From: Amphiscolops sp. MND2022
Lineage: Eukaryota
DNA length: 64,000 bases
NCBI GenBank assembly: GCA_964187785.1
Contig: OZ076410.1
Location: 51,708,001-51,772,000 of the forward strand
Direction of reading: 5' to 3'
Positions within the stretch are counted from its first letter, which is position 1. Each line of letters opens with the position of its first letter. Below are positions 1 through 48,701 of this stretch, piece by piece. A model generated the notes under the pieces. That model was not told where the DNA came from and made no database searches. It worked only from the letters and a program-made list of their open reading frames with translations. Made by a program: the position numbers and the translations under genes.

Positions 1-1584
1 CAACTAGTTGACGAATTCATACAACACCACCATGGCAAATTCGGGAAACACCCAGGTATAGCCAAAACCATCCAGCAATGCCGCGAAAAGTACTACTTCC
101 CGGGGCTAGCCGCCCGAATAGCCACCCATATTGCACAATGCCCAGAATGCGCTCAAACGAAAAGGATACCAAATGCCAACATTACACCCCCGCTCATCGA
201 CATGTCCAAAATAGCAATGGGTCCAGAAGACGCACTACAAATGGACATCGTCCCTTTCGACGACCCTTCAGGAGGATACACTGCAGTCATGACAGCGATG
301 GATGTATTCTCCCGTTATCTATTCGCGTATAGCGTCGCCAGAATCGACACCAAGACTGTCACACGGGTCCTTACAGATATCATCACAAGACACTGCTATC
401 TCCCAACAACGATCATCACGGACAAAGGATCCCAGTTCATATCGGAGGCAATGCAACAAACAACAGCCATTCTCGGAATCCAACTAAAACATGCCACCAC
501 CAAACATGCCCAGACGGTAGGCATCCTAGAAAGGACACACGCCTCGCTCAAAGAAAGTCTAAAAATCATGACGGGAGAGAGGCGAACGATGTGGCACCAG
601 TTCTTACCAATGGCAGTATTAAATTACAACACTTCCTACCACACATCATTAGGCTGCGAACCCAGCCGAGTTTTCCATGGAAGAGTGCCATACAACGTAC
701 TCGACCTAAAGTACGGTCTTAAACCCCAGGCCACTGCCCCAACCAACCACGAAATAGCTGAGGGAGTGTTACAACAAACACAAGAAATCCTCAACCAGAG
801 CCAACAAGCCCTGATGCAAGCCTACGTCCGACATAAGCGTTATTATGACCGGAAAGCATCAGCACACCCCTTGGTAGTAAACGACTACTGCTATGCTTTG
901 CATCCAAAGGCGCATAGCCAAGCGACGAAATTGCCGTTTCGGGAATACCTTTGGACGGGACCATATACCGTGGTCAAAACCCTACCCAACAACAACTATT
1001 TGATACGCAAACTCCAAACCAATTTCACACAGATCCTGCACAGAATCAGGCTACGCCCATTCGCAAGCAGTCACAAGCTGCCTGACATTACAGTCCCACC
1101 CAAGGATTTCCAGCAGGATACAGAGGTAGCCATACAGCACGACGACCTCTTCGCAATGGCGTGGGAAGAACTTTACAAAGAATGCCCTAACCAACCCGAA
1201 AACAAACAATTACCTGAACCTGAAGTGATCCAACCAACCCCAGAAACAATCAATGAACCCACCCACCCCGGCCCCCCAAGCCCTAACCTAATATACGACC
1301 CCGAAATCATTCCTAACCACCCAAGTGACCAGACACAGGACCCACTAACCGATATCGATGATGAACCCGAAAATCATACACCCGCACCTCAATCCCCCCG
1401 GAAATCCCACTACAACTTTCGAAAAAACCCGACGTCAAATTGGAAACCAGATTATGCCTATTACAATGCCCTAACAGCCAATTCAACAAACTTGGCATAT
1501 TCTTCCGACGGACTGGACAACGGCCCAGAATTACAGGTTTTAGCGGACCTCGGCCCAGACGGCAGTCCGAGATCAGAAAATTAA
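1..1584 (+). CDS. pol: Gypsy Pol C-terminus (integrase), 5'-truncated by window edge
   Basis: Frame +1 is open from base 1. HHCC zinc finger (HGKFGKHPG...CPEC), DDE core (MDIVPF, TDKGSQF, ILERTHASLKE), GPY/F motif (WTGPYTVV), then a Pro/Asn-rich tail with no chromodomain. Confidence 0.95.
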   Translation, partial: QLVDEFIQHHHGKFGKHPGIAKTIQQCREKYYFPGLAARIATHIAQCPECAQTKRIPNANITPPLIDMSKIAMGPEDALQMDIVPFDDPSGGYTAVMTAMDVFSRYLFAYSVARIDTKTVTRVLTDIITRHCYLPTTIITDKGSQFISEAMQQTTAILGIQLKHATTKHAQTVGILERTHASLKESLKIMTGERRTMWHQFLPMAVLNYNTSYHTSLGCEPSRVFHGRVPYNVLDLKYGLKPQATAPTNHEIAEGVLQQTQEILNQSQQALMQAYVRHKRYYDRKASAHPLVVNDYCYALHPKAHSQATKLPFREYLWTGPYTVVKTLPNNNYLIRKLQTNFTQILHRIRLRPFASSHKLPDITVPPKDFQQDTEVAIQHDDLFAMAWEELYKECPNQPENKQLPEPEVIQPTPETINEPTHPGPPSPNLIYDPEIIPNHPSDQTQDPLTDIDDEPENHTPAPQSPRKSHYNFRKNPTSNWKPDYAYYNALTANSTNLAYSSDGLDNGPELQVLADLGPDGSPRSEN

Positions 1585-1917
1585 TCAGGCCCAGGCACTG
1601 GCCTGGACCACAATCCTATGACCTGACTTCAAATCTCTTCAAATCACAAGGGCTTTCACTCACTCTACTGTACTCTACAACTCGGATGAAAACAATACAG
1701 AGGCTAAATACTAAATTGAATAACCCAGTGGACCACCGAGCTGCCTCAAATTTTTTCTCCGCTCCATAAAATCAGAGCATGATTTTTTTCTTTTCTACCA
1801 AAGGAATCGACACGCGGAACCTAACTATATGAGAAGAACAATGACTAATTCCAACAAGAACAATAAAAACAAAATACAAAGAAACAGTTTCATCAAAGTC
1901 TCCAGTTACGATATCAT

Positions 1918-4900
1918 TCAACACGACTTTCCTTGCCGAACGTTCTTCTTACTCCTTTTCTTCTTCTCGGATGCTGGACTAGTAGTGCCCTGTTGAGATC
2001 CAGAAGCTACAACAAGAGACGCAGTATCAGCTACAGACGTACCTCCAGAGGCCTCTCCTCGAGAAGACGGGCCGGCTGTCATACGAGCTCTCCACTCATC
2101 AACTTGCCCAGCATAATAAGCAGTATAACGCCGAAAGATACTTCCGAAGACATCTTCATATGGATGACGACTGACTCCGCCCCAGGGATCGAAGGTACTG
2201 CAACCCAAGAACAGATGACCAACTAACAGATTACTCTTCAATTCTGCATTACACTCCACTGTCAAAAGCTCAGTTGATACAAACTTAGGCTGAATAACAA
2301 ATGACTGAACACCACTCAAACCAGTCTGGATCACAGACAGAGGCACACTACAACCACTAGTTGATATTTCAACGTGAGGAAGAGGACGAGGCGCAGGACA
2401 CACAATCACGCGCACGAGACGAACGACCTGCCTCACATGAGCCCGGCACTGGAAGATATCAAGAGACTCCAAAAAACTGAATACATCATCGATTTGGGAA
2501 CAATCCACAGAACGTCCACGCAACTCCACGACCAAAGACTTGAACTCGTTTGATGCGGCCTCACGCTCCACACCATCTAGACAACCAGACTCCTGCAAAC
2601 AGGCAACAAGATCCTGGAATAAGTCTGCGACGTAATCGGCGACCTCGCCCAGCAACATGTCCACACTTAAGGAACTCAACGACCGAGCAATCCGCGAATG
2701 GGCGTAAGGACTGGAACTGAGCTGCTTCAAAAGTTCAAGTAAACATCCCTGACACTCGCGCAAGAAAGAGCGACGAGGGGACTCATCCAACCCTCGGAGA
2801 GCTTTCAAAATAATGGGTTCCCTCTGCAGGCACTCAGCAACTGTCACATTGGCCCAATTATTCAACGGCTTTGACACATACTCGGACCACTTGTCGATTG
2901 AAGGCAATTGGCTGACTTTCTTGACCTTGCTCAACAGACTCCAATAGAAGAAACAGAAATCACTGAAGTTCCTGCAACCGTAGACCCGCACAGAAGACTC
3001 AAACTGTTTTTTACAATTAGAGCGGAAACACAGCAACACCACATGCAATAAAGCAAGACGAGGCAATCCCAAACGATCCGAGCACAACAACGAATCCAGA
3101 TCAACAACGTTAACGTTCTTCTTCATCAAGAGAGTATCATTTGACAGGCAAATCTTGATATCTGACCAATTATCCAGCAGCTCCTGGACCACATCACACC
3201 AAGAGGCAGCAGGTATGACACCAGACTCCAAGCACATACGGAATCGAGGCAAGTTCAATAACCAAGCTTGATGTCGGACTCGCTTTAGGCGCTGCACCAA
3301 GTATTCCACAGTCGCAAAGGGGTCCACTGACCCAACGCACATAAAACTAGCATCATGCATCAAACGACGCAGAACATCACAGTCGAAGACAATAGCAGCA
3401 ATTGGAACAGGTCGACCGACAGCTTGGCACCAATCCACGTAGGCATTGAACAGCACAGGAGGACAACCCTGGATGGAAACGGGGCCCTGACGAGTTGGCA
3501 CAAGCGATAATACCCGAGCCAAACACTGAATCTCCGTCTCACAGGAGACCCCGCCAAACTCCACATCAACCAGACAGATCTCACGTACAGAATCGTCGGG
3601 ACAGCAACGGACGACACACTTCACTCCTGAGAGCGAAGACTGCAGCGCCAAGCTAAAAGGACTGTCACCCAGCCACGATTTCACACGTCGAAGAACGCGA
3701 GGGAAAAGAGTTTGGACAATAACAACCAAAGTCTCCGTCTTACTCCAGCTCACGGAAGCATAGGGACTCTCCACCGGCAAGGTCGTCCGAAATTGGTTCC
3801 AGAGACGACGCAGGAACACTTGTGACCCTCCACTCCTCAGCAACTCGAAGAGGCATCCAACGAGAGTCGTCGGCGGTACATTGGAAGGGACGCCAACCAG
3901 TGCATCGACCTCGTCCTCCACAAACTTGTTCATTCTGCCGAGAGTGACAGGGGGCGTCAGTTCAATTTCAGCCCGTAATTCAGCAGACACCTCAGCAACG
4001 GGGATGGCATCTAAATTCTCGCTGTAAATAACATCCTCATGGTCCAGACGGTAGCGACGGTCTTTCAAATAATGCCCCTTGCATTTAAAATGCCTCCAGA
4101 TGCCCCGGGGACCCCGGGATAAGAAGGAGACATCTTTCCGACAAACGGCACAATTGAAACCATTGGGGCTTTTGTCAGTACGCCTGCTGACGAATAGACG
4201 CGGAATTGGATGATTGACCATAGCTTTAGTCAATACATGACGCTCAGTCTGTTTCTTCTTCCGCTCTTCATCACGGGCCAACAATCGCTCCTTCTTCGCC
4301 TCCACAGGATCCAGGACGCGCCCAGGGTCACTTGCGTCGATCCCTTTCTCTTTTAAGAGCCGTGACAATTCTTCAAATTCTGCAACATACAACACCAATG
4401 AATGACCCAATATACTATGACGAAATATCAACAACCCAAATAAAACAGACAAACAAAGTAGACAACAACACAAGACCAGACGGAAGACAATCAGAATACA
4501 CTACGAAATGAAACAACTTCAGAAAACAACTTACGCTTTGCCAGGGTCTTGGTCTCCTTCAGAGTCTCTGTCCGCTCAGCCCGAGCAGCACTACGAGCGA
4601 GCATCACACACTGGGCAGCAGACATCATCATTGGCGACCCAGGAGAAGCAGTCTTCAGACCCACTGAAAAGACACGAAGATAAAGTACAAGCCACCTGTA
4701 TATTATTTCCCCAGGTCAATACAACAAAACGATCACTAAAGAAAACGCAATCATCAACAAAATAACAGCCTCGTTCAACAATACCTTTTTCCCAGTCGTT
4801 GTATACGACCGAAGGCTCCAGTCCGATTGCATCACGGCCATGTTGCGTCCGAGACGTCTGGACACCCTCGTCAGCGAGCACAGATGCCGGATCACTCCCA

Positions 4901-5749
4901 ACAGCAGGGGTATCACGTGCCTCCTCACAAACGAAAACGTCACTGCCACTGGAGGTAACAACCCGAGGCACCACAGAAGCTTGCATCCCAGTAATAGGAG
5001 TTGGATCAGGGACTATAGAACAAAACGAAAAGTATGCACAAGAGAACAGAACACATGCGCTTAGCACCCTTCTCAAGCAACTTTAAACCAAGAAAGAAAG
5101 AAGACGGAATACCTACTTTCAAGAGTACGGGATGCAGAGACGGTTGGAGGAAAGTAGTCATCTCCAGAACTATCGACCAGAGCAGGTGGCCTGGGAATGG
5201 ACCCAGCCACTACATCTGCCAGCCGCACCCGCTTAGCAGAACGCACACTACTCGTCGACAGAAACCGACTAGTCCGTTGTTTTGAACTGCTCTGAGATTT
5301 CGTCTGACTAGGGGGGACATAATCTTCATCGCTCTCATCATCAGTAGCTACAAAAAGTAGATGAAAAAGAACGCGTTCAAAAGTAACCTAGAAAAGGCTG
5401 GCCACCTATCAATTCCTAGGAAAAGTGTACCTTTCTTCCTTGCCAGGTAGTCCAGATCATGACGCTCCTCACTACAAGTCGAGTGGTAGGATCCAGTCTC
5501 CACACAACTTCCACCGTCCGAAGGCCCAGGACCTTCATCTCCAGAACTGTCCTTCTCGCCAAAACCATGACCAGCAGAGATTCCACCGTCAGTTGCTTCT
5601 CCACCCTCCCTTTTGTCGCCATCCACAATCACTTCTCCACCCTCACGGACAACTGACTCAACCACAGACTCAACTTCAGCTCCACTCTCGACTAACTCCG
5701 CTTCACGACTGCGGTGCAACAATGCACTATCTTCTTCAGTCGAGCACAT
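1918..5749 (-). CDS. Antisense accessory gene of E1: predicted 5 exons (5749-5431, 5347-5117, 5012-4785, 4663-4535, 4379-1918), 1122 aa; BED-like zinc finger plus inactive hAT-transposase-like body
   Basis: Uninterrupted 851-codon ORF 1918-4473 whose first 31 codons are a pyrimidine tract ending TGTTGCAG. Four GT..AG introns, all phase 1, join open exons totalling 3369 nt (1123 codons). Finger motif FNCAVCRKDVSFLSRGPRGIWRHFKCKGH. Basic NLS-like motifs AKRVRL and KKKRSKK. The start codon is uncertain because another acceptor lies at 5760. Confidence 0.8.
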
Positions 5750-5973
5750 AATCAATTGTCTAAAAATAACAAACCATGGAAAAAAAATAAAAAGAAGATG
5801 TGGCGTAAAATCAATGGAAATATTATTACTAAAAGTTATCTACTATATAAGGAGAGTTGTTCAGTCTGCCAGCTGAACAATTCATGGAGTTGACACAAAC
5901 CGTGTGAACAAATTTTCCAAGCGAAGCAAATCAGTTGTACTAAAAATTGACTGACGCTTAGTTTACTACTACA

Positions 5974-6546
5974 ATGAATCGTCCAAATTCAAACAGCAAA
6001 ATGGACGAAGACGTCTTCATTCTCGAACGAGATCAACAGCAGCAGCCCGAACAAAGAGCCGGTACACCGCCACCAGATTATAACCTAATTACCACGCGGC
6101 AAATTAACATTACTTACGAAATCGTTAAAACACAGGACTACCACGTAGTCCTAGTACATGAAGAAACGCCGGCCGATACTACGAACACAGAAAACGAGAC
6201 GGGAGTCATCAGACGTTTCACGCAAGACAACCCGGTGATCCCCGAAGACACATTTGTGAGCCCGGTCAGGCAATTCGACCGTGAAATCTACGATGATCCC
6301 GACAACAACGTTGACAGCCCAATAAGTTTCTACAGTAGCTCAGAAGGCTACTATTCGGGCAGCGATTGGGAGACAGACTCATCTTGGCGATCCTACAATT
6401 CATCAACTGACGATCTCCCAACGCTTTCCAAATCAATTTCCCAATTTCTCCTTCCTGAGGGAACTGGGTACAGAAGCCGAGGACTGTCACAGCCCCGCCT
6501 GAGCTGCGAGCACTGCAACAAACACAACCCAGTCTTCGAAGAATAA
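5974..6546 (+). CDS. Small acidic sense ORF (ORF3) of E1, 190 aa, running into the 3' LTR
   Basis: ATG-initiated ORF, D/E/S-rich, ending GLSQPRLSCEHCNKH. The LSQPR codons span the inferred LTR start, as in E3. Confidence 0.55.
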   Translation: MNRPNSNSKMDEDVFILERDQQQQPEQRAGTPPPDYNLITTRQINITYEIVKTQDYHVVLVHEETPADTTNTENETGVIRRFTQDNPVIPEDTFVSPVRQFDREIYDDPDNNVDSPISFYSSSEGYYSGSDWETDSSWRSYNSSTDDLPTLSKSISQFLLPEGTGYRSRGLSQPRLSCEHCNKHNPVFEE

Positions 6547-8256
6547 ATTGGGAAAAGAACAAAAGAAGAGGAAATAGACAGCTGACAAACAACCAGAAAC
6601 AAAGGAGGTAAACAATATAAATTTGAAGTAATTAAATAAAGAAATATATGCATATTAGTATTATTGTACACTTATATAAATACGTACTTACGGAATAACG
6701 GAGCTATTCGTGCAGTTAATGATAATACAATACCTGGCAGGCAGCCTGAGAATTGCAACCTCAGCGGATTAATATGCAAGCGCGCGCTATAGTGAATACA
6801 TGTAAATGAACTAATGTCTAGTGCAGTGATTTATTAACAATACGAATGCAAATATACCAACAATTGAGATTACTGTGCTAACTTAATAGAACATCACGTA
6901 CCACGGCCTGGGATGCGGCCTGAGAATTAATTACGATAAATCAATCACGAAAGTGAAAGATGATGATGCTACCATGTAACTTTGTCTCAAAATGAATCTA
7001 GAGATTATTAGCTATGATCTTAAACTATATTGTCGTTTAAAATATTACATATAACGTTCTTTTACATGTAAATATTGATTAATCTATAAACAGGCCTGAA
7101 CCGCAGCCTGAACCAAAGATTTAGTACCGAATATTAAACCAAGTGTTAATAACATGTATATCCTGTTCCCTGAATCTGTTGTCGTTCAATTGCATTAAAT
7201 ACCTTTCCGAACAATATATCTGATGCTGTTTATAGTTAATAGTTGCTTTACCCACTGAACATGTTTGTCCGTCCCGGACTATGGCCTGGGACCAGGCTTT
7301 GTGTTATTAACCAAAATCAGAGCTACAAATACTGTAGAAGCAATTCTACTCTTTCATTTAAAGCCTAATGTGTAATTTGTGTTAAATTTCATTCAAATTG
7401 TTGCTGATTTATTTAATTTAGGGAATTATTTGTAAAGAAAAATTGGTTGTCATCATTTTTTCCAAATTTGTGCAGTTAATCAATCTTATTCAGTGACTCA
7501 TTGCGCGTGTCGTTGATAATTTGGAAATTTGGAAATTGGAGGCGAAGGGAAGCGAAGTCGCAACTCAGGCCGGAAGTGGACGCGTGCTTTTCTTCGGAAA
7601 GCATGAACAAGCTGAAAGCCTGAGTTCGACAAAGCGGAACTGAACTTCCTGTTTCCCTGCCTCGGACGGACGCCGGACTGAACAAAATGTGAAGTATGTT
7701 CGTGTCTTTTCCCCGATTTCCGGGATGGAAAGTATAAATACAATGCGAGCTAGAAGCCATTTTTAGTTGAATTTTGTTATTTTGCGAAACAACTCTCTTT
7801 CGTTTAACGATAATTAAAAATCTTGAAACGTCACACTTTGTCACTTGAGAACTTGCTCTAATTTCCTTAAAAAGAAAATCGAGAATTATCAAGCCTAAGT
7901 AAGATGCCAGAACGTAGCTCCAAAAGAAAAGCCAGAAGGGATTCCCCTGTGAACTCTTTAGACGAACCTGAATCTTCTAGCATGAGAACTGAAAACGCTG
8001 CTAATTTGTCTGATAAGGATTTTACGGAATTATCTGAAAAGATAGGAAAATCTGTAAGTAAAAGAATCAAAGACGCGGAAGTCGGACAGCGCGAGATTCT
8101 GAAGATGATAGAGAACCTGACTTCTAAAATCGATACGCTGACAGAAAGACCGTCTAACAACGTGCGTCATGGTCCCGACGACGAGGATGCAGAAAACGCG
8201 GAATATAGATATAGACTAGTTGAACCAAGTGATTTACTCCCGAATCACGGTCAACA
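6485..8256 (+). repeat. 3' LTR of E1 (~1.8 kb)
   Basis: Starts TGTCACAGCC, matching the LTR starts TGTCGCAGCC/TGTCTCAGCC (E3) and TGTCGCAGGC (E2). AT-rich U3, TATAAAT at ~7734 and a gag-like ORF start, as in the other LTRs. No partner LTR in the window, so the ends are inferred. Confidence 0.62.
6732..7297. promoter_or_regulatory. Array of paired GCCTG motifs in the E1 LTR U3
   Basis: Motif pairs 12 bp apart at 6732/6744 (first one ACCTG), 6906/6918 and 7094/7106, then the palindrome GCCTGGGACCAGGC at 7284-7297. Cluster spacing is 174, 188 and 190 bp. Function is inferred. Confidence 0.45.
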
Positions 8257-8272
8257 CACTCCTCCAGTGTGA
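7904..8272 (+). CDS. gag: Gag N-terminal fragment encoded inside the E1 3' LTR (truncated at LTR end)
   Basis: MPERSSKRKARRDSP resembles the E3 gag start MAKKRNRRSTRRQSP and is followed by a coiled-coil-like segment. Same position as the gag starts in the E2 and E3 LTRs. Confidence 0.6.
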   Translation: MPERSSKRKARRDSPVNSLDEPESSSMRTENAANLSDKDFTELSEKIGKSVSKRIKDAEVGQREILKMIENLTSKIDTLTERPSNNVRHGPDDEDAENAEYRYRLVEPSDLLPNHGQHTPPV

Positions 8273-11045
8273 TAGTATATACAACTTTGAACCAATAAAA
8301 CATTTTTAGCCTTTCAGCACGTAATTGTCAAAATGAGGATTTTTTTTTAACAAAAAAACAAGGAAAACCTTTCGGTAAAAAGGTAAAACAACACGTGCTG
8401 GAAATTGGGAGGCTTGAACAGTTTAGCGGACTTGATGATACGGGACCAATCTGCCAAGAAACTAACATTTTCTCTAAAAGTTCCTGGTTTGAGAATCGCT
8501 CAAAATAGTACCCTCCGACATTACCAAGTCTGTTATTGCAAGTAGTGACCGGGGATCTCACATGTAAGATTTTTAGTTTTCCAGTAGCTTTAACTATTTG
8601 TTGAGATTAGCTCCACTACAACTCAATTAAACCCGTAGGTAATCAAACCTTTGCTTGAGGCAAGAACTGGCTGAGTATCTACATAAATTTTTATTTACTC
8701 CGAAGAAGAGACAAATCAACTTAATCGGAGACAGTGGGGGTAAGTGTGACAAGGAAATCACGATCTTTGCAACTCTGCAATCTTGCCTTCATTCGAGGGG
8801 TTTGTCTCGCAACTCTTTAGCTGTTTTAGGGTTTTAGGGTGTCTTTTCACAGGTGTTTCACATCCACGAATAATATGATAACATCGATAATAGCGGAGAA
8901 TAGTACGAATTGTAGTTAGAAGGCATATAACACAAGAAAACAATCAACAAGGGAATCAGCATGGTTTGGTTGTGTATCCGTGAGGAAGGTGCGTGATATC
9001 GGAGATATCGAATAAAGTCACTTGCCGCAAAATCTTTATCGGTCTTGGAGTGAAAGCAATCAGTGAATTCGAGGGCCACTGAACCCGTAATACATGTATA
9101 GACGATAGGCCAACTGTCCACCCTGCTGCTGGGTCAAAATTCGTACAAAGGGATGGCGGATCGGCGATCTGACCGGCAACTTCTAGAAGAAGGCACGGGC
9201 GTCACGGCCAATCAAAGTAAATCTGCAATCTTGATAATGCGGTGCCTGTTGCGGAACGTATCGGCGACGGAAAGTAACCACAGATTCTCCATATTCCAAC
9301 TCGCGCTTATACTAGTCAATAGAAAAAACAAAAACTGAATACAAGATGTCCAGGTTGTGTGTGCGCAATCGAATTGAAGAAAACATTTGACACCAAAAAC
9401 TTCTTCTGAAGCGGTATTCGCCGTAGTGCCATTATTAAAAAATTTTCGAAAGAAAAAAATATTCTATTCTATTCCATTTGCAATTTGCATCTATGGGAAG
9501 ACTTGGCTCCGAGGTATAATCAGATATGAATATCGCATTTGAACAGTTCCAGCAAAATAATGTAATTTTTGTGGGTGTATGTTTGCATTTCATCAAGGGT
9601 ATCTTCACATGAAGAGAAACGTTGATTTTTCACAGAATCTAAACAAACTTTTTGGAGCTTCAATTTTGCACGACCAAGAACGTAAAAAACCAGAATGTCA
9701 TTGGCTAGTTAGTCAATATTGTTTTTTTGTAGCCTAAATTTTTGAAAATCTCAAACGGAAATCATACTTCAAGGAAGCATTACGAACGAAAACTATAGGA
9801 AGCTCCTATACGTGTTTTATCGCCAGAACATTTTGCAATCTCTCTCTTGTCAACATATAAGTTGAGAAAGGTTAAAACATGTCTATGCAATTTTCTCAGC
9901 ACATACTTGATGAAAACACAAACACGTATCTGAAACTGATCACAGAAGAACCTAAATTCGTTCAGTGGTATACCAAGTCCCTCGATTAACGAACATGTGT
10001 TTCCATTGATATGGACCTTGAACATTATAATGTTGTTCGATTTTGTTAAAACTTACTCTTTCATACCTTAGTTGGGTTTTAATTGTTTCTTTTTGGAGAA
10101 CCATAGGTAGAAAACGTACTTGAATTTGGGGTACAATTTCTTATGGCTTGATTTTTGATACTTTAATTTTGATAATTTTATTGGAGCCAACCCGTTCTTC
10201 TTCGAGATTTTGTAACACCATGCAATTTGAAAGGCTTCTGGAAATCTATCCAAGATTGTAGTATTTTGAGATTTTGGCATTTTTATAAAAAGTCCATTAT
10301 GTTTGCTCGAAGCCACATACCGAACTTTTTTTATAACGTTTCTAGTTTCGCCGGTTTAGCAAAAGCAACTGAAAAGCCTGACAATAGATTGATGGGATTT
10401 GGATTATTCGACCTTATTATTATTCTATTGTGTACTTGATGGAAGACACTTTTGGCTCTTCTGAAGAATGCAGATTTACGTCAGCTATGTAATTGTTCAA
10501 ATTGGTCAAATTTAAGTTGAGTTGGTCTCGTAGAGCGAAATTTATTTGGGGCCTCGACACTGGGAAATCAAATTTTGCGTAATTTAAACCCCAACCAAAC
10601 GTTTTTTTTGCTAGGAGTGATAACCGCAGTGACTTTATGGTTGGCACACTTGTACATGCGGACATGGAGTACATGTTTATAAGGTTGGAACCGCTTCGTA
10701 ACCCCGGCCTCAAGATACAAGCACCGGAAATGCAGTAGATCAACCGTCAACGCTCCGGAATAAGGTATAATATACATGGAATCGATTGCCCATCGGATAT
10801 TAGGCCAACTGCGTACAATCGCGGACCCCTAGGATGTGCGTATAGAATGCGCGAACCCAATAAAATATACCCTGAAGGTAAAAATATACTCTTCACCACC
10901 GACAAATGAAAACGACAATTGACGAACTTGAATTATCAGAAACGGATGGCAATAACAAAAGTAATCGATTTCCAACAAATCGAATGTGCAACTATTTTAG
11001 AACCTATGTGATGAAGTTCTCGACGCACCGCAATGATAGATGCTG

Positions 11046-12855: not shown

Positions 12856-14493
12856 TCATACATTAGTTTCAACTAAGTTATTGAGAGAAATGACGTCAGC
12901 GAAATTTATATTGGCAAGCTCTAACTGGTCTTCCGAATGGAAATCTTCATCGGGTTCAGCAGATTGCGTAGCCGAGATGATGTGCACGTCGATCTCTTGT
13001 GATTGGATGCTAGGGCAGCTGTGCAGATTGCTGTGGGTTTGCTGGATATCTGGGCATGGATGCAAAACAACTTCGTGCAGTTGGGATACACACAAGCTAC
13101 TTTGACAAGTATCTTTGGATTGGGCAGTTGAGCACCGACTCAGATTGCTATCCTTTGATTGGTTGAACGAGGAGTGTGCTTCAACATTCACAATCTCAGC
13201 TGGTGCTTGCCCAGGGATCCGAGGCAAATCATTCATCATTTTTTCAGCCGACTCGTCTTTTGGTAAGTCCTCTTCTTCGTGGTCAAAATTTCTTTCTTTC
13301 CTGCTTAGTTTAGAGGCTGAAGGTGGAATTCTTTGAACGAATCTCCCCAATGCAGATGTCCTGACTGCATTGAAAAAGTTACAACAGTCTTGTCTAAACT
13401 GTTGACTCAGTCCTGCGTAAATGGCGGGCATGAGAATGAAGTTGAGATTGTAGAACATTTGCAGGTACTTACCACTGACTTTGATGAAGTTCGGTGTCCA
13501 CTCCATTTGTTTGTCGATGCCGACCAGGAGGAACAAGCAGCCATTGGGCACAAAGCAGATGATGTACACAGTTGTCAGGGTGGCTGAAATGAATGCAGCT
13601 CGGTCGCGCATTCGTTCTACGGGATCTTTTCGACCACTGCTGCTTTTTGTATTTGAATAGGTGTGAGGTTGGGATTTCTGTGGACCAGGGGTTGAGTTTC
13701 CTGACACATTCTTGTTTCCTGCTTTCTCCTGATCCTTGTCACGTTTCTCCATTTCACCAGAAACTTTTACTGGACAGGAATTCACAACTTTCGAATCTGT
13801 TTTGCGTACACGATGGCTTCTTTTCTTCTTCCGTCGGGATGCTCTGACGCGGCTGCAAAGTTTGCCAAAAACCAGCAGGTAAATGAAGATGATGAAGAAT
13901 ACATTTCCGAAAGCGAACACTGTGTAAATATAATAAATTACGTGGAACGTTTGAAGTAAAAAGATAATAACAACCATGAAAAAGGACAGAATCACATTGA
14001 ACAAACAAAGACACCAGCTTTTGGCATAAGAGAGAACAGTTTTTCGCGGGAAAAAAATTAACAGAGCTCTGTTTATTGCGATGCTTTGGAGAGTCAGAGT
14101 TGATAGTGTTTCCAAGAAAACTGTCATGCCGTATAGTAAGTCCGATTCCAATCCATGGCAGTGATACCCGAAAAAGTCCATTTCCAATGGGAAAACGAAA
14201 CCACAGGCAACCAAATCGATGAAAGTCAAAAATACCATTAGTTGATCAGCCGCAAACTTTGTTTCTTCTTTGCACATTTTGTGCAACAGTATCAAGAGCA
14301 CAAAAACATGACAGGTGCATCCGATGATACTTCCGAACAGGAAGCACATTTTGATAGCAGCGCATTCAGAGTCGGAATAAGCGAGTGCTTCTAGCCACAC
14401 ATTAGTGTAGTTCTCTTCTAAATGGTAACCGTAATCGTAGTAGTCTGTCATTATAAATACAATGTTAGTAATAAATGCAACGGGACTTTTCAC
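12856..14493 (-). CDS. Class A (rhodopsin-like) orphan GPCR, single coding exon; likely start at Met15 (14451)
   Basis: Seven hydrophobic segments. TM2 LTFIDL (D2.50), TM3 IAINRA (DRY-equivalent), TM5 IY, TM6 CFVP (CWxP-equivalent), TM7 MPAIY (NPxxY-equivalent), helix-8 FR then CC. N-glycosylation site NYT, long basic ICL3 and Ser/Thr-rich tail. Confidence 0.92.
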   Translation of the reverse strand: MKSPVAFITNIVFIMTDYYDYGYHLEENYTNVWLEALAYSDSECAAIKMCFLFGSIIGCTCHVFVLLILLHKMCKEETKFAADQLMVFLTFIDLVACGFVFPLEMDFFGYHCHGLESDLLYGMTVFLETLSTLTLQSIAINRALLIFFPRKTVLSYAKSWCLCLFNVILSFFMVVIIFLLQTFHVIYYIYTVFAFGNVFFIIFIYLLVFGKLCSRVRASRRKKKRSHRVRKTDSKVVNSCPVKVSGEMEKRDKDQEKAGNKNVSGNSTPGPQKSQPHTYSNTKSSSGRKDPVERMRDRAAFISATLTTVYIICFVPNGCLFLLVGIDKQMEWTPNFIKVSGKYLQMFYNLNFILMPAIYAGLSQQFRQDCCNFFNAVRTSALGRFVQRIPPSASKLSRKERNFDHEEEDLPKDESAEKMMNDLPRIPGQAPAEIVNVEAHSSFNQSKDSNLSRCSTAQSKDTCQSSLCVSQLHEVVLHPCPDIQQTHSNLHSCPSIQSQEIDVHIISATQSAEPDEDFHSEDQLELANINFADVISLNNLVETNV

Positions 14494-19500: not shown

Positions 19501-20560
19501 CCATTACTTGTTTTAATCAAACGGAAAAAAAACGTCATGAATTCAATATCAGCACAAGATAAATTGACCATGGACGCATGTACCATCGACAATTTAGAAA
19601 TCGCAGACCACATCTGCAGTAACGAGAAACCTGATCGCCCGATGGAGAGATATCGTAAAACCGGACATTTACCGACAACCCGGCAGCCGTTTGAAAAGAT
19701 ACCACGAGCCAAAATTCCTTGGAAAGAGAGGCAAATGATAAAAGAACAATTGCAGCTAGCTATTCAAAACAACGAAAGCGGACTAAAACATTAGTCTCAA
19801 GGCTTCCAATCGCAGGAGAGGCGTAACGAGCAATGGACGTTGGACCCCTTCTGAGACGTAGACCGTCCACAACGCCAGCAATCGCAACAAGAAAACCAAC
19901 CCGGACCCTCTTCACAAAACGAACAAATCTACCAGGAATACGTTCCGATGGAAGAATAAAAATCGTATCAGATACAGACCAAGACCCGTCAATTTTAGAA
20001 ATTCCGGCAGTCAACTGGGCAAATTACCTGAGCGTTAAAAGCATCCAGTACATAAAGATGGTCCATGCCCCAAAAGTGGAAGTAGATACACTCAATGATT
20101 AGGATTTGGGTAATGCAGTAAGAGAGACGGAAAAGGTTTTCTCTCCCTATCTACAATTACTCACCAAATAACGACCGAAATTTCCTCAAAATACTTGTTT
20201 GCCTCGAACGCCAGCAACACGATAACATGCTCGAGGAGTACATGCTGTACAAAAAGAAGCTTTCAGCCAGATACGGGCTGGTATTCTATGAGGACCGAAT
20301 CACAGTTCCAAAGAATTTTAAGACATCTGTCATCAGCTTCCAGATTTGATGACCAAGAATCAGAAACTATCCAGGAGGAGTGCCATGGTTGCATGCCTCG
20401 GAAGGCGTTCCAGTCACTTCAATTCAGTCAAACCTACGTAAGTGATATTATTAAAAGCAACATAGCACGCGGAACGACCAAGTCTCATCGGCTGATTAAA
20501 GTCTCACACGCCCATTTCATTGGTCGACAGGTGTTTCCAAAACATCATTTTTAATTTTAA
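16591..20560 (+). pseudogene. Degenerate Ty3/Gypsy gag-pol of a different family from E1-E3
   Basis: CCHC knuckle KCVKCRKLRHYAKCC (~17520). RT motifs SKLDLDYAFGQL (~18368) and PAWLNDILVVT (18556-18588). RNase H TDTSTKGFGATPWQ and YVSNELEIIAVV (~19000-19145). Integrase N-terminal remnant ~20200-20470. Many stops and frameshifts; LTRs not resolved. Confidence 0.88.
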
Positions 20561-22818
20561 CCCGTTCACACCTATTGCATTTCAAAATAGTTTTGATAAG
20601 AAAACGCTCCCGAACATTTTGATCCTGATATTGTGGTTGTTTCTCTAATAGACTGTAATATGTAATAGTATGAGTTTCTTTTAGGTAGTTGAATTCCCAA
20701 ATCGTACATGTATTTTCTTCGAAAAAACCAAGATTTACATTTTTTTCAACGATTATCGAAAGATTCCTAAAATAAAACATAGCATGGGTTCCAGAAAAAC
20801 TAAGGGCTACATTTTATGTGTGGTTATATGGAGATCCACATATAAAAGTACCTTGAAAGTTTTGAAGGCAACCGGCTCGAAAGAAACAAAACTTCCTTTA
20901 GATCCATCTTTTTCCTAGTGTGATGAGTTTTTTTAAAGTTTTTTGAGCAATTTAATGAAGATTGAAAACGAACGTTTCGTAATTTGATGAAACGTTGTCA
21001 TTCAAGGAGAGTCCCGAAGGAAACGAAAGTATAGCATAATCGAACTCTCATACAACTCATGCAAGAATCTCGCAAAAGTGGAACATATCAGACATAATCT
21101 GCAAGAATCATCAATGTATCTTACCTATCGGACGAACATGTCCGATTCTAGCAGATCAGACATTTCTTACAGTTTCAGGCGTCTCTTGAAAAAAATTTAA
21201 ACGTCAAGACTTTTCGTGCAAAATTTGTTGACGGATCTTACCAAGACAATGTCTGGAAGTTCTAAGAAATTCTACAATAGGTTGTTTGAAACATACGGAA
21301 AAAGTCAATAGAGTTTTTTCAATCTTAAACCAAGAAAAAGTTCAAATTGCATACAAACCTGAAAGCGAATGTAACAGAAGGCATAACTGCATATAACACA
21401 AAGAAAGTTTAGAAATTCCGGCAGTCAACTGGGCAAATTACCTGAGCGTTAAAAGCATCCAGTACATAAAGATGGTCCATGCCCCAAAAGTGGAAGTAGA
21501 TACACTCAATGATTAGGATTTGGGTAATGCAGTAAGAGAGACGGAAAAGGTTTTCTCTCCCTATCTACAATTACTCACCAAATAACGACCGAAATTTCCT
21601 CAAAATACTTGTTTGCCTCGAACGCCAGCAACACGATAACTTGCTCGAGGAATACATGCTGTACAAAAAGAAGCTTTCAGCCAGATACGGGCTGGTATTC
21701 TATGAGGACCGAATCACAGTTCCAAAGAATTTTAAGACATCTGTCATCAGCTTCCAGATTTGATGACCAAGAATCAGAAGCTATCCAGGTGGAGTGCCAT
21801 GGTTGCATGCCTCGGAAGGCGTTCCAGTCACTTCAATTCAGTCAAACCTACGTAAGTGATATTATTAAAAGCAACATAGCACGCGGAACGACCAAGTCTC
21901 ATCGGCTGATTAAAGTCTTACACGCCCATTTCATTGGTCGACAGGTGTTTCCAAAACATCATTTTTAATTTTAACCCGTTCACACCTATTGCATTTCAAA
22001 ATAAATTTGATAAGAAAACGCTCCCGAACATTTTGATCCTGATATTGTGGTTGTTTCTCTAATAGACTGTAATATGTAATAGTATGAGTTTCTTTTAGGT
22101 AGTTGAATTCCCAAATCGTACATGTATTTTCTTCGAAAAAACCAAGATTTACATTTTTTTCAACGATTATCGAAAGATTCCTAAAATAAAACATAGCATG
22201 GGTTCCAGAAAAACTAAGGGCTACATTTTATGTGCGGTTATATGGAGATCCACATATAAAAGTACCTTGAAAGTTTTGAAGGCAACCGGCTCGAAAGAAA
22301 CAAAACTTCCTTTAGATCCATCTTTTTCCTAGTGTGATGAGTTTTTTAAAGTTTTTTGAACAATTTAATGAAGATTGAAAACGAACGTTTCGTAATTTGA
22401 TGAAACGTTGTCATTCAAGGAGAGTCCCGAAGGAAACGAAAGTATAGCATAATCGAACTCTCATACAACTCATGCAAGAATCTCGCAAAAGTGGAACATA
22501 TCAGACATAATCTGCAAGAATCATCAATGTATCTTACCTAATCGGACGAACATGTCAGATTCTAGCAGATCAGACATTTCTTACAGTTTCAGGCGTCTCT
22601 TGAAAAAAAATTTAAACGTCAAGACTTTTCGTGCAAAATTTGTTGACGGATCTTACCAAGACAATGTCTGGAATTTCTAAGAAATTCTACAATAAGTTGT
22701 TTGAAACATACGGAAAAAGTCAATAGAGTTTTTTCAATCTTAAACCAAGAAAAAGTTCAAATTGCATACAAACCTGAAAGCGAATGTAACAGAAGGCATA
22801 ACTGCATATAACACAAAG
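19994..22818 (+). repeat. Tandem duplication, 1414-bp unit x2 (19994-21407; 21408-~22818)
   Basis: Both copies start TTTAGAAATTCCGGCAG, and ORFs 20195/21609 and 20517/21931 recur exactly 1414 bp apart with only a few substitutions. Confidence 0.96.
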
Positions 22819-22936
22819 GAAAACGTTTTGGGAGCTGCACGTTTGTCACGATGGTGACCGACAGCAGCCCGCTGAGCCACGTTCTAACTTGCAAGGATAT
22901 TGATGAAAGAACAACTCAACTGTACATGTACAATGA

Positions 22937-23900
22937 GATGTGCCATACTTCAGTGCGACCAGTAACTATCAACAACTTCTAATATATAATAGCTAGATCC
23001 CAGAAGGTAACTTTATTGTCGCAGGCAGGCATTTGCGATGTTTATTTGTCTTACCCATGAAGACGGAAGCAGCAGATTACATCTAGAGTAGTTAGCCAAT
23101 GATTGGACCTAATGTCCGCTTGACTTTAACAAACTTGAATCATATATGTCAAACTTTTATCTATAATCTTTGAATACGTGTATATATTTGTTCTTTTTTA
23201 TATCTAGTTTTATTTCACTGATGCTTCGAAAATCACCCAATTGAAGTATTTCAACCTGTTTGTCCAAGTTACTTCCAGGATTCAGGCATTTTCTGGCAAG
23301 TTAACCCTAAGATTCAGGCATTTTCTTCAAAATTACTTCCGAGAGTTGGCAATTTCTTCCAAGATCATCCAAGATTCATTGGTTTCTTGCAAGATCTTCC
23401 AAGAGACCTGCAAAAATAATAAATGGTCTTCCAAGATCTTGGAACTGATATTTGACGGATTCCTGCAAAAAATCTATGGAATTTTGACTAGGGTCGAAAC
23501 CAAAATGCCGATGGTCGCTTTTCTCCTGTTGAAATTTCAATTTCCTAATGTTTGGGAACGTTTATATAATATCAAATTTCCAAAACTTTTTCAGACATTG
23601 TAAACTTACGAATAACTGATAAACAAACACAGCAAAAATTGTCTGAATTGATAAACGAAACAGTTCGGCGCTATAAATAAAGCTCCTAAAAGCGCAAAGT
23701 TTTTACAAATGTTAAAGGGGAACCATTTGGCATTCTGAAAATCCAGTTTGTTGTAAATTATCAAAAAGCTCGAAAAATGTGAATTTTGAAACAGTCTGAT
23801 AGTGGCGAAAAACCCAAAAATTAAATCACTGCGGTCTTTTTGAAACTTCAATTCGCTGCAAAATATCAAACAAACTGAAGGGGGACCCTTTGGAGACAAA
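22937..23900 (+). repeat. ~1-kb block duplicated at ~25288-26230
   Basis: Shared sequence from GATGTG(C/A)CATAC through TTGAAGTATTTCAACCTG to the CCAAAGGG-family repeat. ORFs 23241 and 25588 are homologous. Confidence 0.88.
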
Positions 23901-23929
23901 AAAGAACATTTCAAAAAATCTGCAAAAAT

Positions 23930-25288
23930 TTAGCATCAAGATTTCCTGCATTTTGAATGTCATGTAAATTCGGTTATAGCATGTAAATTCGGGACACCTA
24001 GTCCCGGGGACGTTTCCAATTTACATACTTATTACGTTCAGTTGCAACAAAACTTTGATTTACAAGACAGAACAATTTTGAATTATTCCCTTGTAGCTAA
24101 TTCTTAGGGGTTCAACAAAGAGACAGAATGCAAAAGCCAAGAAATCTAGAGAATAAGACATGATGTCTGATCTTAATTATCTAGACATAATGGTAGGAAG
24201 TGAAAATGTCAACCCGGTAGAAAGGGAGTTGGCAAATACAATTGCGGTTCACTGAACCACTATGACACTGAGTCCAATTCACATCCTAAGGCGAATTCTT
24301 CCCAGGGAATCAAAGTCAGGATTCTGGTCAAGAAAACACAATACCAAGTCAATCAATAGAAACTTTTACAAATGAAATCAAACTGAGCTTGTCTGAAGAA
24401 ATGGAATCCGTGATGTTCATAATGCATTCAAAAATTATTAGTGCCATGAGCTCTGCGATAATTGAGAGAGTTATCCCGGAGATCCAAAATAAGGTGAGTT
24501 CATTATCTTCAGGAAACAGGGACACTGAGTCCGATTCGTCATCGAACAATCAGGACAAAAACAATGAAACGACTGGGTTCGAACTTGTAATTACAAAAAG
24601 GACAATAGGTCTGCCTTCGATCCAAGTGACACGGAGGACCTTAATCCTTACATGGTCACAGAAGCTACCGACACCTAACGGCAACACGACGAATCCACTC
24701 AAATCCGAACCTGGAGAGACAAGAATTGACTCACAATGTCTCTTCTGACACGACTCTGCCAGTCCCAGAGCCCGACGTTTCTAAATCGCTCCAGAACCCT
24801 ATCAACCGATTGGCCGACGTCCTGGTCAATCTGCAAAATAAGCCTCAATTAATGACGATTAGGCCAGTCACGGCAACACCGATGACATTTGATGACAAGA
24901 GCAAGAAATTCGAGCTCTTTGCGGATTTGTTCCAAAAATGATTGAAATGCAACCTGCAATGATAGAACAAAGGAAAAGTAATCAGTTCCCTTCATTGCTG
25001 AGAGAAGGGGCAGGAAGGGGCATTGCAGACATTTGGGAACATAAACCCAATAAACCGGTAAACTTCGTGCTAGTCGAATTCCGGCGAAATTACGTAGAAC
25101 AAGGAATCACAATCTACGGCAAAACAAAAATAGCCTAGGCACATTTTTGACCCTACGGTGACATGGTGTCTTTTTTGGTGAAAATGCCAAAAGCAAGATT
25201 GACAGCTTGTTATACGTTAAGCTGCCTGCAAAAATGAATTGGTCTGTCAAAATTACCTGTCTAGAGAATTGGACATACGATGAGATGT
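23930..25288 (+). mobile_element. Partial copy of the E2 family: 3' ~720 bp of LTR (to 24652), PBS-like site and gag start
   Basis: Colinear with ~27680-29225. The LTR end ...CCTTACA is followed by TGGTCACAGAAG. Gag motif PMTFDDKSKKFELFADLFQ. Confidence 0.85.
24653..24664 (+). other. Putative primer binding site
   Basis: TGGTCACAGAAG lies directly after the LTR-terminal CA and matches 10/12 to the tRNA-Leu-type PBS TGGTGTCAGAAG. The 28607 copy reads CGGTCACAGAAG. Confidence 0.45.
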
Positions 25289-26595
25289 GACATACGTCAG
25301 TGCGACCAGTAACAATCAACAATTTCTATTATATAATAGCTAGAGCCCAGAAGGTAACTTTTTTGTCGCAGGCAGGCCTCTGCGATGTTTATTTGTCTTA
25401 CCCATGAAGACGGAATCAGCAGATTACATCTAGAGTAGTTAGCCAATGATTGGACCTAATGTCCGCTTGACTTTAACAAACTTGAATCATATATGTCAAA
25501 CTTTTATCTATAATCTTTGAATACGTGTATATATTTGTTCTTTTTTATATCTAGTTTAACTTCACTGATGCTTCGAAAATCACCCAATTGAAGTATTTCA
25601 ACCTGTTTGTCCAAGTTACTTCCAGGATTCAGGCATTTTCTGGCAAGTTAATCCTAAGATTCAGGCATTTTCTTCAAAATTACTTCCGAGAGTTGGCAAT
25701 TTCTTCCAAGATTCGTTGTTTTCTTGCAAGATCTTGCGAGATCAGGTTTTTTTGCAAGATCTTCCAAGAGACCTGCAAAAATAATGAATGGTCTTCAAAG
25801 AGCTGGGAACTGATATTTGACAGATTCTTGCAAAAAATGTATGGAATTTCGATCAAGGTCGAAACCAAAATGCTTAGGGTTGCTTTTCTCCTGTTGAAAT
25901 TCCATTTTTCTGATGTTTGGGAACGTTTATTTGATATCAATTTTCCAAAACGTTTTCAGACATTGGAAACTTACGAAAAACTGATAAACAAACACAGCAA
26001 AAAGTGTCTGAATTAACAAACGAATCAGTTCGGCGTTATAAAAAAACTCAAGAAGCGCAAAGTTTTTAAATTTGTTAAAGGGGAACCATTTGGCATTCGG
26101 AAAATTCAATTTGTTGTAAATTGTCAAAAATCTCGAAAAATGTGAGTTTTGAAACAGGCTGATAGTGGCGAAAAACCCAAATATTAGGTCACTGTGGTCT
26201 TTTTGAAACTTCAATTTGCTGCAGAATATGGAACAATTTGAAGATAGTCTCTTCCGGTTTTGTATCTTCCAAAAAAAAGAGTACATGAAATGGGGCCGAT
26301 TGTACTAACTTAGATGCGTTTCCGGTTGCCAGGCTAGTACATTAGTAGTTCTGTACAAAGTGTCCACTACTCATACATTCTGTTGACTGACGAAAAAAAA
26401 TAGTCGGGCTACTTTCTGTATTAGTCGGGCTACTTTCTTTCAAAGGAAAAGGCGCCGACTAAAAAATTTTCATCAAAAATGAATGAAGTTACTACTAGTG
26501 GTATCAGAGAACGAAAAATTTTTCTATTCATTCGATCGAACAAACTTTTTATTTTTCAACAAAAACGAAGTTTTTTCAAGTATTGCAAAATCTAC

Positions 26596-48696: not shown

Positions 48697-48701
48697 GACG
48701 G

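Follow-up and report, generated by a model that had tools for sequence, protein, structure and literature searches.

A conserved, intron-containing antisense gene of Ty3/Gypsy retrotransposons encodes a protein with a predicted hAT transposase-like fold

A large gene situated antisense to the coding region of a Gypsy element, between the integrase and the 3′ LTR, is a constant part of an entire group of these elements, and the purifying selection acting on it is as strong as that acting on integrase. Structural modeling indicates that its product has a Hermes-type hAT transposase fold, with an RNase-H-like core and an all-alpha insertion. On balance, the gene is probably an anciently captured and probably inactive hAT transposase that serves the element as a nuclear DNA-binding accessory factor, a reading that is held here with moderate confidence.

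The carrier is a Ty3/Gypsy LTR retrotransposon, the 3′ half of which lies in the window, i.e. the whole 64,000-nucleotide stretch of DNA that was analyzed. Of pol, the window includes only the integrase end, and of the two LTRs only the 3′ one. The ORF at positions 202-1584 matches rve with E = 1e-15 and gives a weak match to Integrase_p58_C (E = 2.6e-5; 24.6 bits, which is under the Pfam cut-off of 27 bits). Pol in the window aligns to pol of two relatives (loci L002 and L008), and the order of domains in pol of L001, L006 and L009 is Asp_protease, RVT_1, RT_RNaseH, Integrase_H2C2 and rve. The features of the element are as follows.

1-1584 (+): 3′ end of Gypsy pol (integrase core and C-terminal domain); the window begins inside pol
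1585-1917 (no strand): convergent spacer of 333 bp, from the pol stop to the antisense stop; presumed 3′ UTRs
1918-4379 (-): exon 5, 820 codons plus stop; zinc finger and hAT-like core; dN/dS 0.09-0.19
2074-3741 (-): predicted hAT-transposase-like core, ORF residues ∼245-800, from AlphaFold models and Foldseek
4072-4152 (-): BED-like zinc finger C-x2-C-x16-H-x5-H, ORF residues 108-134
4380-4534 (-): intron 4, 155 nt, GT..AG, phase 1
4535-4663 (-): exon 4, free of indels in comparison with relatives
4664-4784 (-): intron 3, 121 nt
4785-5012 (-): exon 3
5013-5116 (-): intron 2, 104 nt
5117-5347 (-): exon 2, acidic and Ser-rich, with a basic KRVR patch
5348-5430 (-): intron 1, 83 nt, conserved to an unusual degree (identity of 91% with L008 and 85% with L002)
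5431-5749 (-): exon 1, with the start ATG at 5749; acidic, probably disordered N-terminus
5750-5973 (no strand): divergent intergenic region of 224 bp, from the antisense ATG to the small sense ORF; candidate bidirectional promoter
5974-6546 (+): small accessory ORF of 190 aa, which extends into the 3′ LTR
6485-8258 (+): 3′ LTR, TG..CA, which aligns to both LTRs of L002 and of L007; the 5′ LTR lies beyond the window

The antisense ORF occupies positions 1918-4473 (-) and is free of stop codons over 851 codons, the chance of an open frame this long being ∼(61/64)^851, or roughly 1e-18. An earlier note on this DNA had described it as convergent with pol and 333 bp past the integrase stop, and both points were confirmed, the gap being that between the integrase stop (1584) and the stop of the antisense gene (1918). 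The figure of 851 codons holds for the open frame but not for the coding sequence. The frame begins with a TTG, which is a start in the bacterial code only, and its first ATG is codon 85; the conserved coding sequence of the last exon begins at the splice acceptor at 4379, giving 820 codons. When five exons were joined, with the ATG at 5749, a CDS of 3369 nt with zero internal stops was obtained, and the 1122-aa product put forward previously was reproduced exactly. The four introns (83, 104, 121 and 155 nt) are all of the GT..AG type.

Intron positions are shared across clades, being common to L001, L002, L007 and the copy in the window, and for intron 4 both position and phase are common to L001, L002, L003, L004 and L007. 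Intron 3 is found in L001, L002, L007 and L008 and is precisely missing in L003 and L004, where the genomic reading at this point equals the predicted spliced reading of L001. At the end of exon 1, a short conserved block (H-S, then R-H-D-[LI]-D-Y-L) is common to the copy in the window, L001 and L002. In comparison with relatives, nearly all indels in the exons are multiples of 3, whereas most of those in the introns and in the spacer at 1585-1917 are not. Conservation of this kind suggests that the antisense gene is transcribed, spliced and translated.

Values of dN/dS were 0.09-0.19 for the antisense gene and 0.093 for integrase, the latter in comparison with L008. Given this purifying selection (dN/dS 0.09), the ORF is coding. 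The ratio had been named beforehand as a check on the gene, and at ∼0.1 it is not near 1.

The position of the gene was compared among relatives. It is convergent with Gypsy pol (RVT_1, RNase H and rve) in eight of eight informative loci (L001, L002, L003 and L005-L009), which span three clades, 25-98% amino acid identity and two ENA samples. In all seven loci with enough flanking sequence, it lies within a pair of LTRs that are 98.5-99.9% identical, and the LTR pairs of L001, L002 and L005-L008 measure 1.9-2.3 kb. In both insertions that were checked, the LTRs have the form TG..CA and the target duplications (GTATT and GTAGG) are 5 bp long. The gene is thus, as had been claimed, intact and integral to the Gypsy element, with the same place and orientation in every informative locus, and its location between integrase and the 3′ LTR is true of all loci examined. 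Neither TIRs nor a TSD of its own, the marks of an independent insertion, were seen around the gene; a search for terminal inverted repeats around 1585-5973 gave short, chance-like pairs only. No stand-alone host copy was present in the nine loci. The earlier assignment of the ORF as something other than gag, pol or env was upheld, and a reading of it as env was considered and rejected.

The antisense gene is kept in the youngest and most numerous lineages, among them the P0020 cluster, which has 104 member sequences and LTRs that are 99.9% identical. In L007 the antisense gene is intact and pol is fragmented, which could hint at selection independent of the mobility of that copy. A scan of JGI metagenomes gave no relatives of the gene. 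Of 5.8 billion proteins searched with a profile, 118 matched, all of them unnamed and ENA-only, and in an exhaustive representative search the best 150 of 806 matches were all fragments of the antisense-gene family.

The zinc finger C-x2-C-x16-H-x5-H noticed previously in the ORF is present and is conserved in all three clades. Its ligands (C108, C111, H128 and H134 in ORF numbering) are invariant in 12 aligned relatives (alignment A1) and near-invariant in 23 relatives (alignment A2, with the first His in 22 of 23), and they are retained in the third clade at 25-33% identity. A beta-beta-alpha unit is predicted at the finger in AlphaFold model 2. The spacing agrees with the general BED pattern, and no Pfam match to zf-BED was obtained at the finger. 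The N-terminus of the protein is acidic, with 37 D/E vs 20 K/R in 183 aa, and the C-terminal tail is basic. In combination with the predicted hAT fold, the BED-like finger, the acidic N-terminus and the basic tail make plausible the nuclear DNA-binding role proposed in the earlier note, in which the hAT transposase-like nature of the predicted fold was not recognized.

No named homologue of the antisense product was found in sequence and profile searches, and searches of PDB sequences with the single sequence and with a profile gave chance matches only. In Pfam searches at E ≤ 10 with the ORF and 12 relatives nothing relevant was obtained; the hAT dimerization domain (PF05699) and BED (PF02892) were absent among the matches of the 12 members, and four weak, unrelated families matched one or two members. 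The fold was identified through predicted structure, and the link to hAT is entirely a structural one. Two independent AlphaFold models had pLDDT values of 65 and 79, with a core of ∼90 in the second. In these models the core comprises an RNase-H-like beta-beta-beta-alpha-beta unit, an all-alpha insertion domain and C-terminal helices. When both were compared with the PDB using Foldseek, the top 12 matches were all Hermes hAT transposase, with E-values that are modest (1e-4 to 1e-2), probabilities of 0.96-1.0 and TM-scores to target of 0.37-0.53; the next-best folds had probabilities of <0.25. Overall likeness to the Hermes fold covers about 600 aligned positions, and the sole significant match in BFVD was a protein annotated with a hAT C-terminal domain.

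Catalytic positions were assigned from the predicted strands, and on this assignment the acidic share does not exceed 0.3 in the columns of predicted strand 1 or in the eight that follow strand 4. Three residues ahead of strand 1, 92% of sequences have an Asp; two clusters have Asn or Leu there, and the most abundant lineage has Asn. A single Glu does not vary among the sequences (34 of 34). In terms of these predicted strands, the evidence leans towards absence of a conserved DDE catalytic triad.

Upstream of the antisense ATG, the 224-bp region at 5750-5973 is better conserved than the exons, with 92% identity to L008 and 86% to L002 as opposed to 88% and 70% for exon 5. Its minus strand carries an 18-nt conserved motif (5860-5877) and a TATA-like box (5844-5849). 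The element in the window and L001, L002, L007, L008 and L009 each have a single copy of the motif. This region is a candidate internal promoter, perhaps a bidirectional one. No canonical AATAAA for the antisense gene was seen on the minus strand of the spacer at 1585-1917. The 190-aa sense ORF has no Pfam match and is conserved in L001, L002, L008 and L009 (40-67% amino acid identity; dN/dS 0.16), and its indels relative to L002 and L008 are multiples of 3.

These observations can be accommodated by the following model. An ancestral Gypsy element would have captured a hAT transposase long ago, and the antisense gene would descend from it. The captured transposase would no longer cut DNA, a loss suggested by the first two canonical catalytic positions, which are without a conserved acidic residue, and by the integrase-type 5-bp duplications. 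A promoter of its own in the conserved region upstream of the ATG would drive the gene, and the transcript would be spliced; the antisense orientation would let the introns survive passage through the sense-strand RNA of the element. The protein would then enter the nucleus, bind specific DNA and act in trans as an accessory factor. By analogy with transposase-derived ZBED-type factors, which act on host genes, it would most likely regulate the expression or the chromatin state of its own element, with a role as an integration tether being less likely. A more specific version, that a retrotransposon lineage “domesticated” an ancient hAT transposase as an intron-bearing, trans-acting gene with its own promoter, which has been retained over a long period and the product of which shields the element against host silencing or directs where it integrates, is possible and is advanced only tentatively.

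The same DNA-binding architecture would also serve a negative regulator, either a transposase-derived repressor of its own or competing elements that controls copy number or a factor kept for the benefit of the host. Such a role would fit the intact gene of L007 despite its fragmented pol, and an upstream region that is conserved and independent of the LTR. However, retention of the gene in the youngest and most numerous lineages, of which P0020 (104 sequences; LTRs 99.9%) is an example, fits a factor that helps the element, the acidic N-terminus is more like an activation region, and none of the nine loci holds a stand-alone host copy; a repressor is considered unlikely. Rather less credence still is given to an integration-targeting tether that would bind genomic sequences or chromatin and guide the integrase complex. 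Chromodomains guide integrase in chromoviruses, and here the finger looks sequence-specific, the transposase fold is of an oligomerizing type and the gene is co-inherited with integrase in all clades, but no insertion-site preference is evident from the two target duplications read (GTATT and GTAGG).

That the product is a still-active hAT-type transposase or nuclease, providing the element or a partner element with a second, DNA-level way to move or cut, appears improbable. The hAT fold is present, as are the invariant Glu (34 sequences) and the Asp near strand 1 (92%), yet strand 1 and the stretch after strand 4 are without a conserved acidic residue, and the most abundant lineage has Asn in place of this Asp. 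hAT elements have TIRs and 8-bp target duplications, whereas the insertions described here show 5-bp duplications and TG..CA LTR ends, with no TIRs around the gene. Nested insertion of an unrelated transposon or host gene is a frequent event in repeat-rich regions such as the window, and an open frame could also be incidental to a functional non-coding antisense RNA. Both explanations are very improbable and were rejected: position and orientation are constant in all eight of the informative loci, which represent three clades and two samples at 25-98% identity, TIRs and a TSD were not seen around the gene, dN/dS is ∼0.1 and the exon indels keep the frame.

As a captured hAT transposase turned accessory factor, the antisense gene can be compared with several known systems. 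Plant Ty3/Gypsy elements of the Tat/Retand type carry antisense genes termed aORF-3R, including gene23 of Grande, that of RIRE2 and ORF4 of Retand with TRP28/Transposase_28; their products have been predicted or shown to bind DNA and to be located in the nucleus, and in Grande the gene was shown to have an upstream promoter of its own (PMC7264820, PMC11963269). The gene described here is likewise an accessory gene that lies between pol and the 3′ LTR, antisense to gag-pol, and is lineage-wide. Unlike the gene of Retand, it has no match to TRP28/Transposase_28 (PF04195) or to any other Pfam family. Unlike the plant genes, it has four to five conserved introns, encodes a product with a predicted hAT fold and a BED-like finger, is followed by a second, small sense ORF, and resides in a host that is probably an animal and not a plant.

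Likeness to hAT transposases such as Hermes, and to their ZBED-type derivatives, lies in the predicted RNase-H-like core split by an all-alpha insertion and in the N-terminal Cx2C...H..H finger. Domesticated hAT proteins are sequence-specific DNA-binding regulators. In contrast to hAT transposases, the antisense product has no detectable sequence similarity to the family and no conserved acidic residues at the first two catalytic positions, and in place of a TIR element with 8-bp duplications the carrier has LTRs and 5-bp duplications. The presumed adopter is also different from that of domesticated hAT proteins, being a retrotransposon and not the host. VANC, the anti-silencing protein of the Mutator-like VANDAL elements of Arabidopsis to which the earlier note drew an analogy, belongs to a DNA transposon, and only the concept is common to both, namely a DNA-binding accessory protein that is encoded by a transposable element and acts in trans on its own family. 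No similarity by sequence was found between the antisense product and VANC or any named family, and the likeness may be taken as a functional hypothesis, not as a relationship.

Among animal retroelements, the ORF3 genes of bdelloid rotifers presumably lie in sense orientation. Those captured by LTR elements of the Juno/Vesta type (env, DEDDy, GDSL, CC and TM) are likewise extra genes acquired by an animal retroelement; none is reported as a transposase in the source, in which a search by terms gave no sign of an antisense gene (PMC5408684). Unlike HBZ of HTLV-1, the gene described here is large, putatively transposase-derived and putatively promoted internally. HBZ is a small bZIP protein and is transcribed from the 3′ LTR. 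It is a precedent in that a retro-transcribing element carries a regulatory gene that is both antisense and spliced (as cited in PMC7264820).

A limited literature search found no published animal equivalent, in agreement with the statement in the earlier note that none is described. To our knowledge, nearly all described cases of an LTR retrotransposon with an antisense accessory gene come from plants. The present product can be placed structurally, as a likely hAT-transposase derivative, and apparently occurs in an animal, a placement of the host that is based on a GPCR-like ORF elsewhere in the window. If the proposed origin is correct, adoption of transposases is not confined to host genomes, and a selfish element can take over a gene from another one. 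Should the anti-silencing or targeting role also apply, the protein would be an animal counterpart of the plant transposable element proteins and would represent a new class of retroelement accessory gene. The element further provides a natural example of the rule that an intron-containing gene in a retroelement must sit antisense, and its antisense product, which has a finger and a known fold, is a tractable one for probing the function of accessory genes. Because neither Pfam nor named protein databases detect the family, the antisense gene would be missed or masked in standard annotation of transposable elements.

Beyond the element, the window is repeat-rich. Rfam and tRNA scans of the window found nothing. 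An intronless GPCR-like ORF is located at positions 12856-14493, and a relative of it, P0253, carries 7tm_1.

An antisense gene that is conserved, under selection and interrupted by introns lies inside LTR elements inserted by integrase; it encodes a finger and hAT-fold protein. In the window, the minus-strand ORF of 851 codons described in the earlier note is open at 1918-4473 and lies, as stated there, 333 bp past the stop at 1584 of the plus-strand integrase ORF, which carries the rve integrase core domain (E = 1e-15). The reported finger is likewise present (C108-x2-C111-x16-H128-x5-H134). The start of this ORF is TTG, which is valid under the bacterial code only. Upstream on the minus strand, four short GT..AG introns were read from the window sequence, and the exons joined unaltered give a CDS of 3369 nt and 1122 codons with no internal stops, matching exactly the 1122-aa product length given earlier. 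Conserved coding sequence begins at the acceptor at 4379, before the first in-frame ATG; therefore, an upstream exon is required, as the exon model supplies. The window copy has no breaks in the antisense gene or in the visible part of the integrase.

Features of the element in the window
5749-5431, minus strand, antisense gene exon 1
5347-5117, minus strand, antisense gene exon 2
5012-4785, minus strand, antisense gene exon 3
4663-4535, minus strand, antisense gene exon 4
4379-1918, minus strand, antisense gene exon 5 (all junctions GT..AG, CDS open)
5974-6546, plus strand, small sense ORF of 190 aa, divergent from the antisense gene and extending into the 3' LTR
6485-8258, plus strand, 3' LTR (5' part of the element outside the window)

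The exon model was compared with homologues at related database loci. L002 (∼72% amino acid identity) has GT/AG at all four homologous intron positions and an open product of 1127 codons. L007 (∼96% nucleotide identity) has 1123 codons, with one acceptor dinucleotide non-canonical, and L001 (47% amino acid identity) has 1171 codons, interrupted where the window gene is by introns of 90, 113, 111 and 153 nt. L003 and L004, from another sample, have intron 4 in common with the window and in the same phase, but not intron 3; translated straight through that point, their genomic sequence matches spliced L001 as predicted, residue for residue. Given that precise absence is the expected product of intron loss through spliced RNA, this comparison supports, at the level of sequence, the predicted junctions and real splicing. 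An extra intron is present in L005 and L006 (third and deeper-branching clade, 25-33% identity).

Intron differences among relatives
L003 251-445 and L004 694-888, precise absence of intron 3 by comparison with spliced L001
L005 ∼8355-9692 and L006 ∼8348-9657, region with the extra intron, within a single exon in the window

Exon indels relative to L007, L008 and L002 are multiples of three, the sole exception being one frameshift in the L008 antisense gene; those in introns and spacer are mostly not. The introns contain 47% A on the plus strand.

A protein search returned 31 clusters with ∼726 member sequences (45-98% identity), every one of them an unnamed ENA protein. Eight loci (L001, L002, L003 and L005-L009), representing three clades and two ENA samples, were read with flank; L004, too short for its flanks to be judged, was left out of this count. 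In all eight, the antisense gene is convergent with pol, 150-400 bp apart; the check proposed earlier, whether further copies keep it between integrase and LTR, came out in favour of the proposal. The adjacent pol carries RVT_1, RNase H, Integrase_H2C2 and rve, except in L007, where it is fragmented into several called ORFs with RVT_1 and RNase H only. Gag (DUF1759) lies beyond pol in most of these loci. At all seven loci with flanks of sufficient length, the whole unit is enclosed by LTRs of 1.9-2.3 kb with 98.5-99.9% identity between them. In L001 and L002, the LTR ends are TG..CA, with flanking duplications of 5 bp (GTATT, GTAGG); such ends and duplications are the signature of integrase. 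No inverted repeats bracketing the antisense gene were found in the window, and a nested insertion is effectively excluded by this result together with the convergent arrangement at eight of eight loci.

A copy ∼96% identical to that of the window occupies L007 10001-12559 and 13443-18598, with the antisense gene open and pol split. Two degraded Gypsy pol fragments in the window (31285-33613, plus strand; 42335-44861, minus strand), where short ORFs match RNase H and rve, are relatives of this Gypsy group at 62-70% nucleotide identity.

Values of dN and dS were obtained by the Nei-Gojobori method.

Substitution rates
Window and L008, last exon: dN 0.043, dS 0.48, dN/dS 0.09
Window and L007, last exon: dN 0.019, dS 0.10, dN/dS 0.19
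L007 and L008, last exon: dN 0.051, dS 0.476, dN/dS 0.11
Window and L008, integrase: dN 0.104, dS 1.126, dN/dS 0.093

The antisense gene thus shows dN/dS of 0.09-0.19, far from the value of ∼1 that the earlier note had named as telling against its proposal, and its constraint equals that on a core replication gene, the integrase. No overlapping sense ORF able to account for the low dN/dS was found in the antisense region of the window. Non-coding function alone is effectively excluded as an explanation. Separately, the antisense genes of L008 and the window are close (dS 0.48), with integrases much further apart (dS 1.13), and the small sense ORF of L008 shares 95% amino acid identity with that of L002; this mosaic pattern suggests recombination between element lineages in the ancestry of L008.

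Sequence searches gave no transposase, BED or hAT family match in Pfam (12 members, E ≤ 10), no PDB match with a profile and no homologue bearing a name in a set of 5.8 billion proteins. Structure models were obtained for the window protein (pLDDT 65, residues 245-800 forming a well predicted core) and, independently, for P0020, a cluster of relatives 47% identical to it (37-sequence alignment; pLDDT 78.7, pTM 0.68, core ∼90). In each, a beta-beta-beta-alpha-beta-alpha unit precedes a long domain made entirely of helices. With either model as query, Foldseek placed chains of Hermes, a hAT transposase, in all of the first 12 PDB positions (best E 1e-4, probability 0.96-1.0, ∼600-670 aligned columns, TM to target ≤0.53), and matches below Hermes had probabilities <0.25. 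The sole significant match in a viral structure library was a Pandoravirus protein annotated as having the hAT C-terminal dimerisation domain (E 4e-4). BED fingers are common in hAT enzymes, and the modelled Hermes-like fold and the N-terminal Cx2C...H..H finger together make up a hAT transposase architecture. The product of exons 1-2 is acidic and Ser-rich (37 D/E and 20 K/R in 183 aa); the C-terminal tail is basic.

RNase-H-like transposases place their first two catalytic carboxylates at strand 1 and just after strand 4. An Asp near strand 1 occurs in 92% of sequences, although the lineage that is youngest and most abundant has Asn there, and one Glu is invariant (34/34). An active transposase is nevertheless unlikely, given that the alignment contains no conserved acidic residue in the predicted strand 1 columns or in those just after strand 4, and the modelled protein is likely to be catalytically inactive. 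We propose that a hAT transposase was captured anciently by the element and subsequently lost catalysis. The gene would be expressed from an internal promoter, and its antisense orientation may be the condition for intron retention, since splicing would remove sense-strand introns from the genomic RNA. The protein may be a nuclear, sequence-specific DNA binder acting in trans for the element. Its tentatively favoured role is as a regulator of transcription or chromatin state in the element itself; repression or copy-number control and an integration tether rank next.

The known systems most similar to this one are antisense aORFs in the plant elements Retand, Grande and RIRE2, which are alike in position, orientation and lineage-wide presence (PMC7264820, PMC11963269). 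Their products are suspected nuclear DNA binders (PMC7264820, PMC11963269). By contrast with the hAT fold and finger of the window gene, the plant aORFs carry TRP28 or no recognisable domain. Extra ORFs captured by animal LTR elements were named ORF3 in a rotifer paper (PMC5408684). No account of a spliced, hAT-derived gene lying antisense in a Gypsy element of an animal came up in a literature search of incomplete coverage; this is no more than absence of evidence.

Between the antisense ATG (5749) and the small sense ORF lie 224 bp that are conserved above the coding exons: across 5750-5973, L008 shares 92% identity and L002 86%, compared with 88% and 70% for exon 5. Intron 1 (5348-5430) is likewise conserved above the coding exons between lineages. 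Blocks within 5750-5973 are invariant even in L001, and a partly palindromic 18-nt motif (5860-5877, minus strand; one per element) is unchanged between clades with proteins only 47% identical. In the window clade, a TATA-like box precedes the antisense ATG by ∼95 nt. The region 5750-5973 may constitute an internal promoter, possibly bidirectional.

The small sense ORF is a second accessory gene of the element. It is conserved in L001, L002, L008 and L009 at 40-67% amino acid identity (40% in L001), with dN/dS of 0.16 and frame-preserving indels. Its product is acidic and Ser-rich and has no Pfam match; a PPxY motif occurs in it solely in the window and L002. At this position, the third-clade loci L005 and L006 carry an ORF that shares only short motifs.

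Window 1-6000 exhibits strong strand asymmetry on the element sense strand (AT skew +0.2 to +0.3, GC skew -0.15 to -0.26), which runs on through the antisense gene; flanking DNA is symmetric. The window is largely repeat DNA, including a tandem duplication of 1.4 kb at 98.8% identity and, at 79-93% identity, several dispersed repeats 0.6-1 kb long.

Tandem duplication and dispersed repeats
19991-22822
22929-29226
26609-27622 and 54285-55274
35210-36677 and 47181-48697

The sole host-gene candidate noticed in the window is an intronless 545-codon ORF (12856-14493, minus strand) with the look of a seven-helix receptor (GPCR-like); together with its relatives, it points to an animal host. Only four relatives, all from ENA, were present among 5.8 billion proteins (93%, 91%, 46% and 39% identity), one of which matched Pfam 7tm_1.
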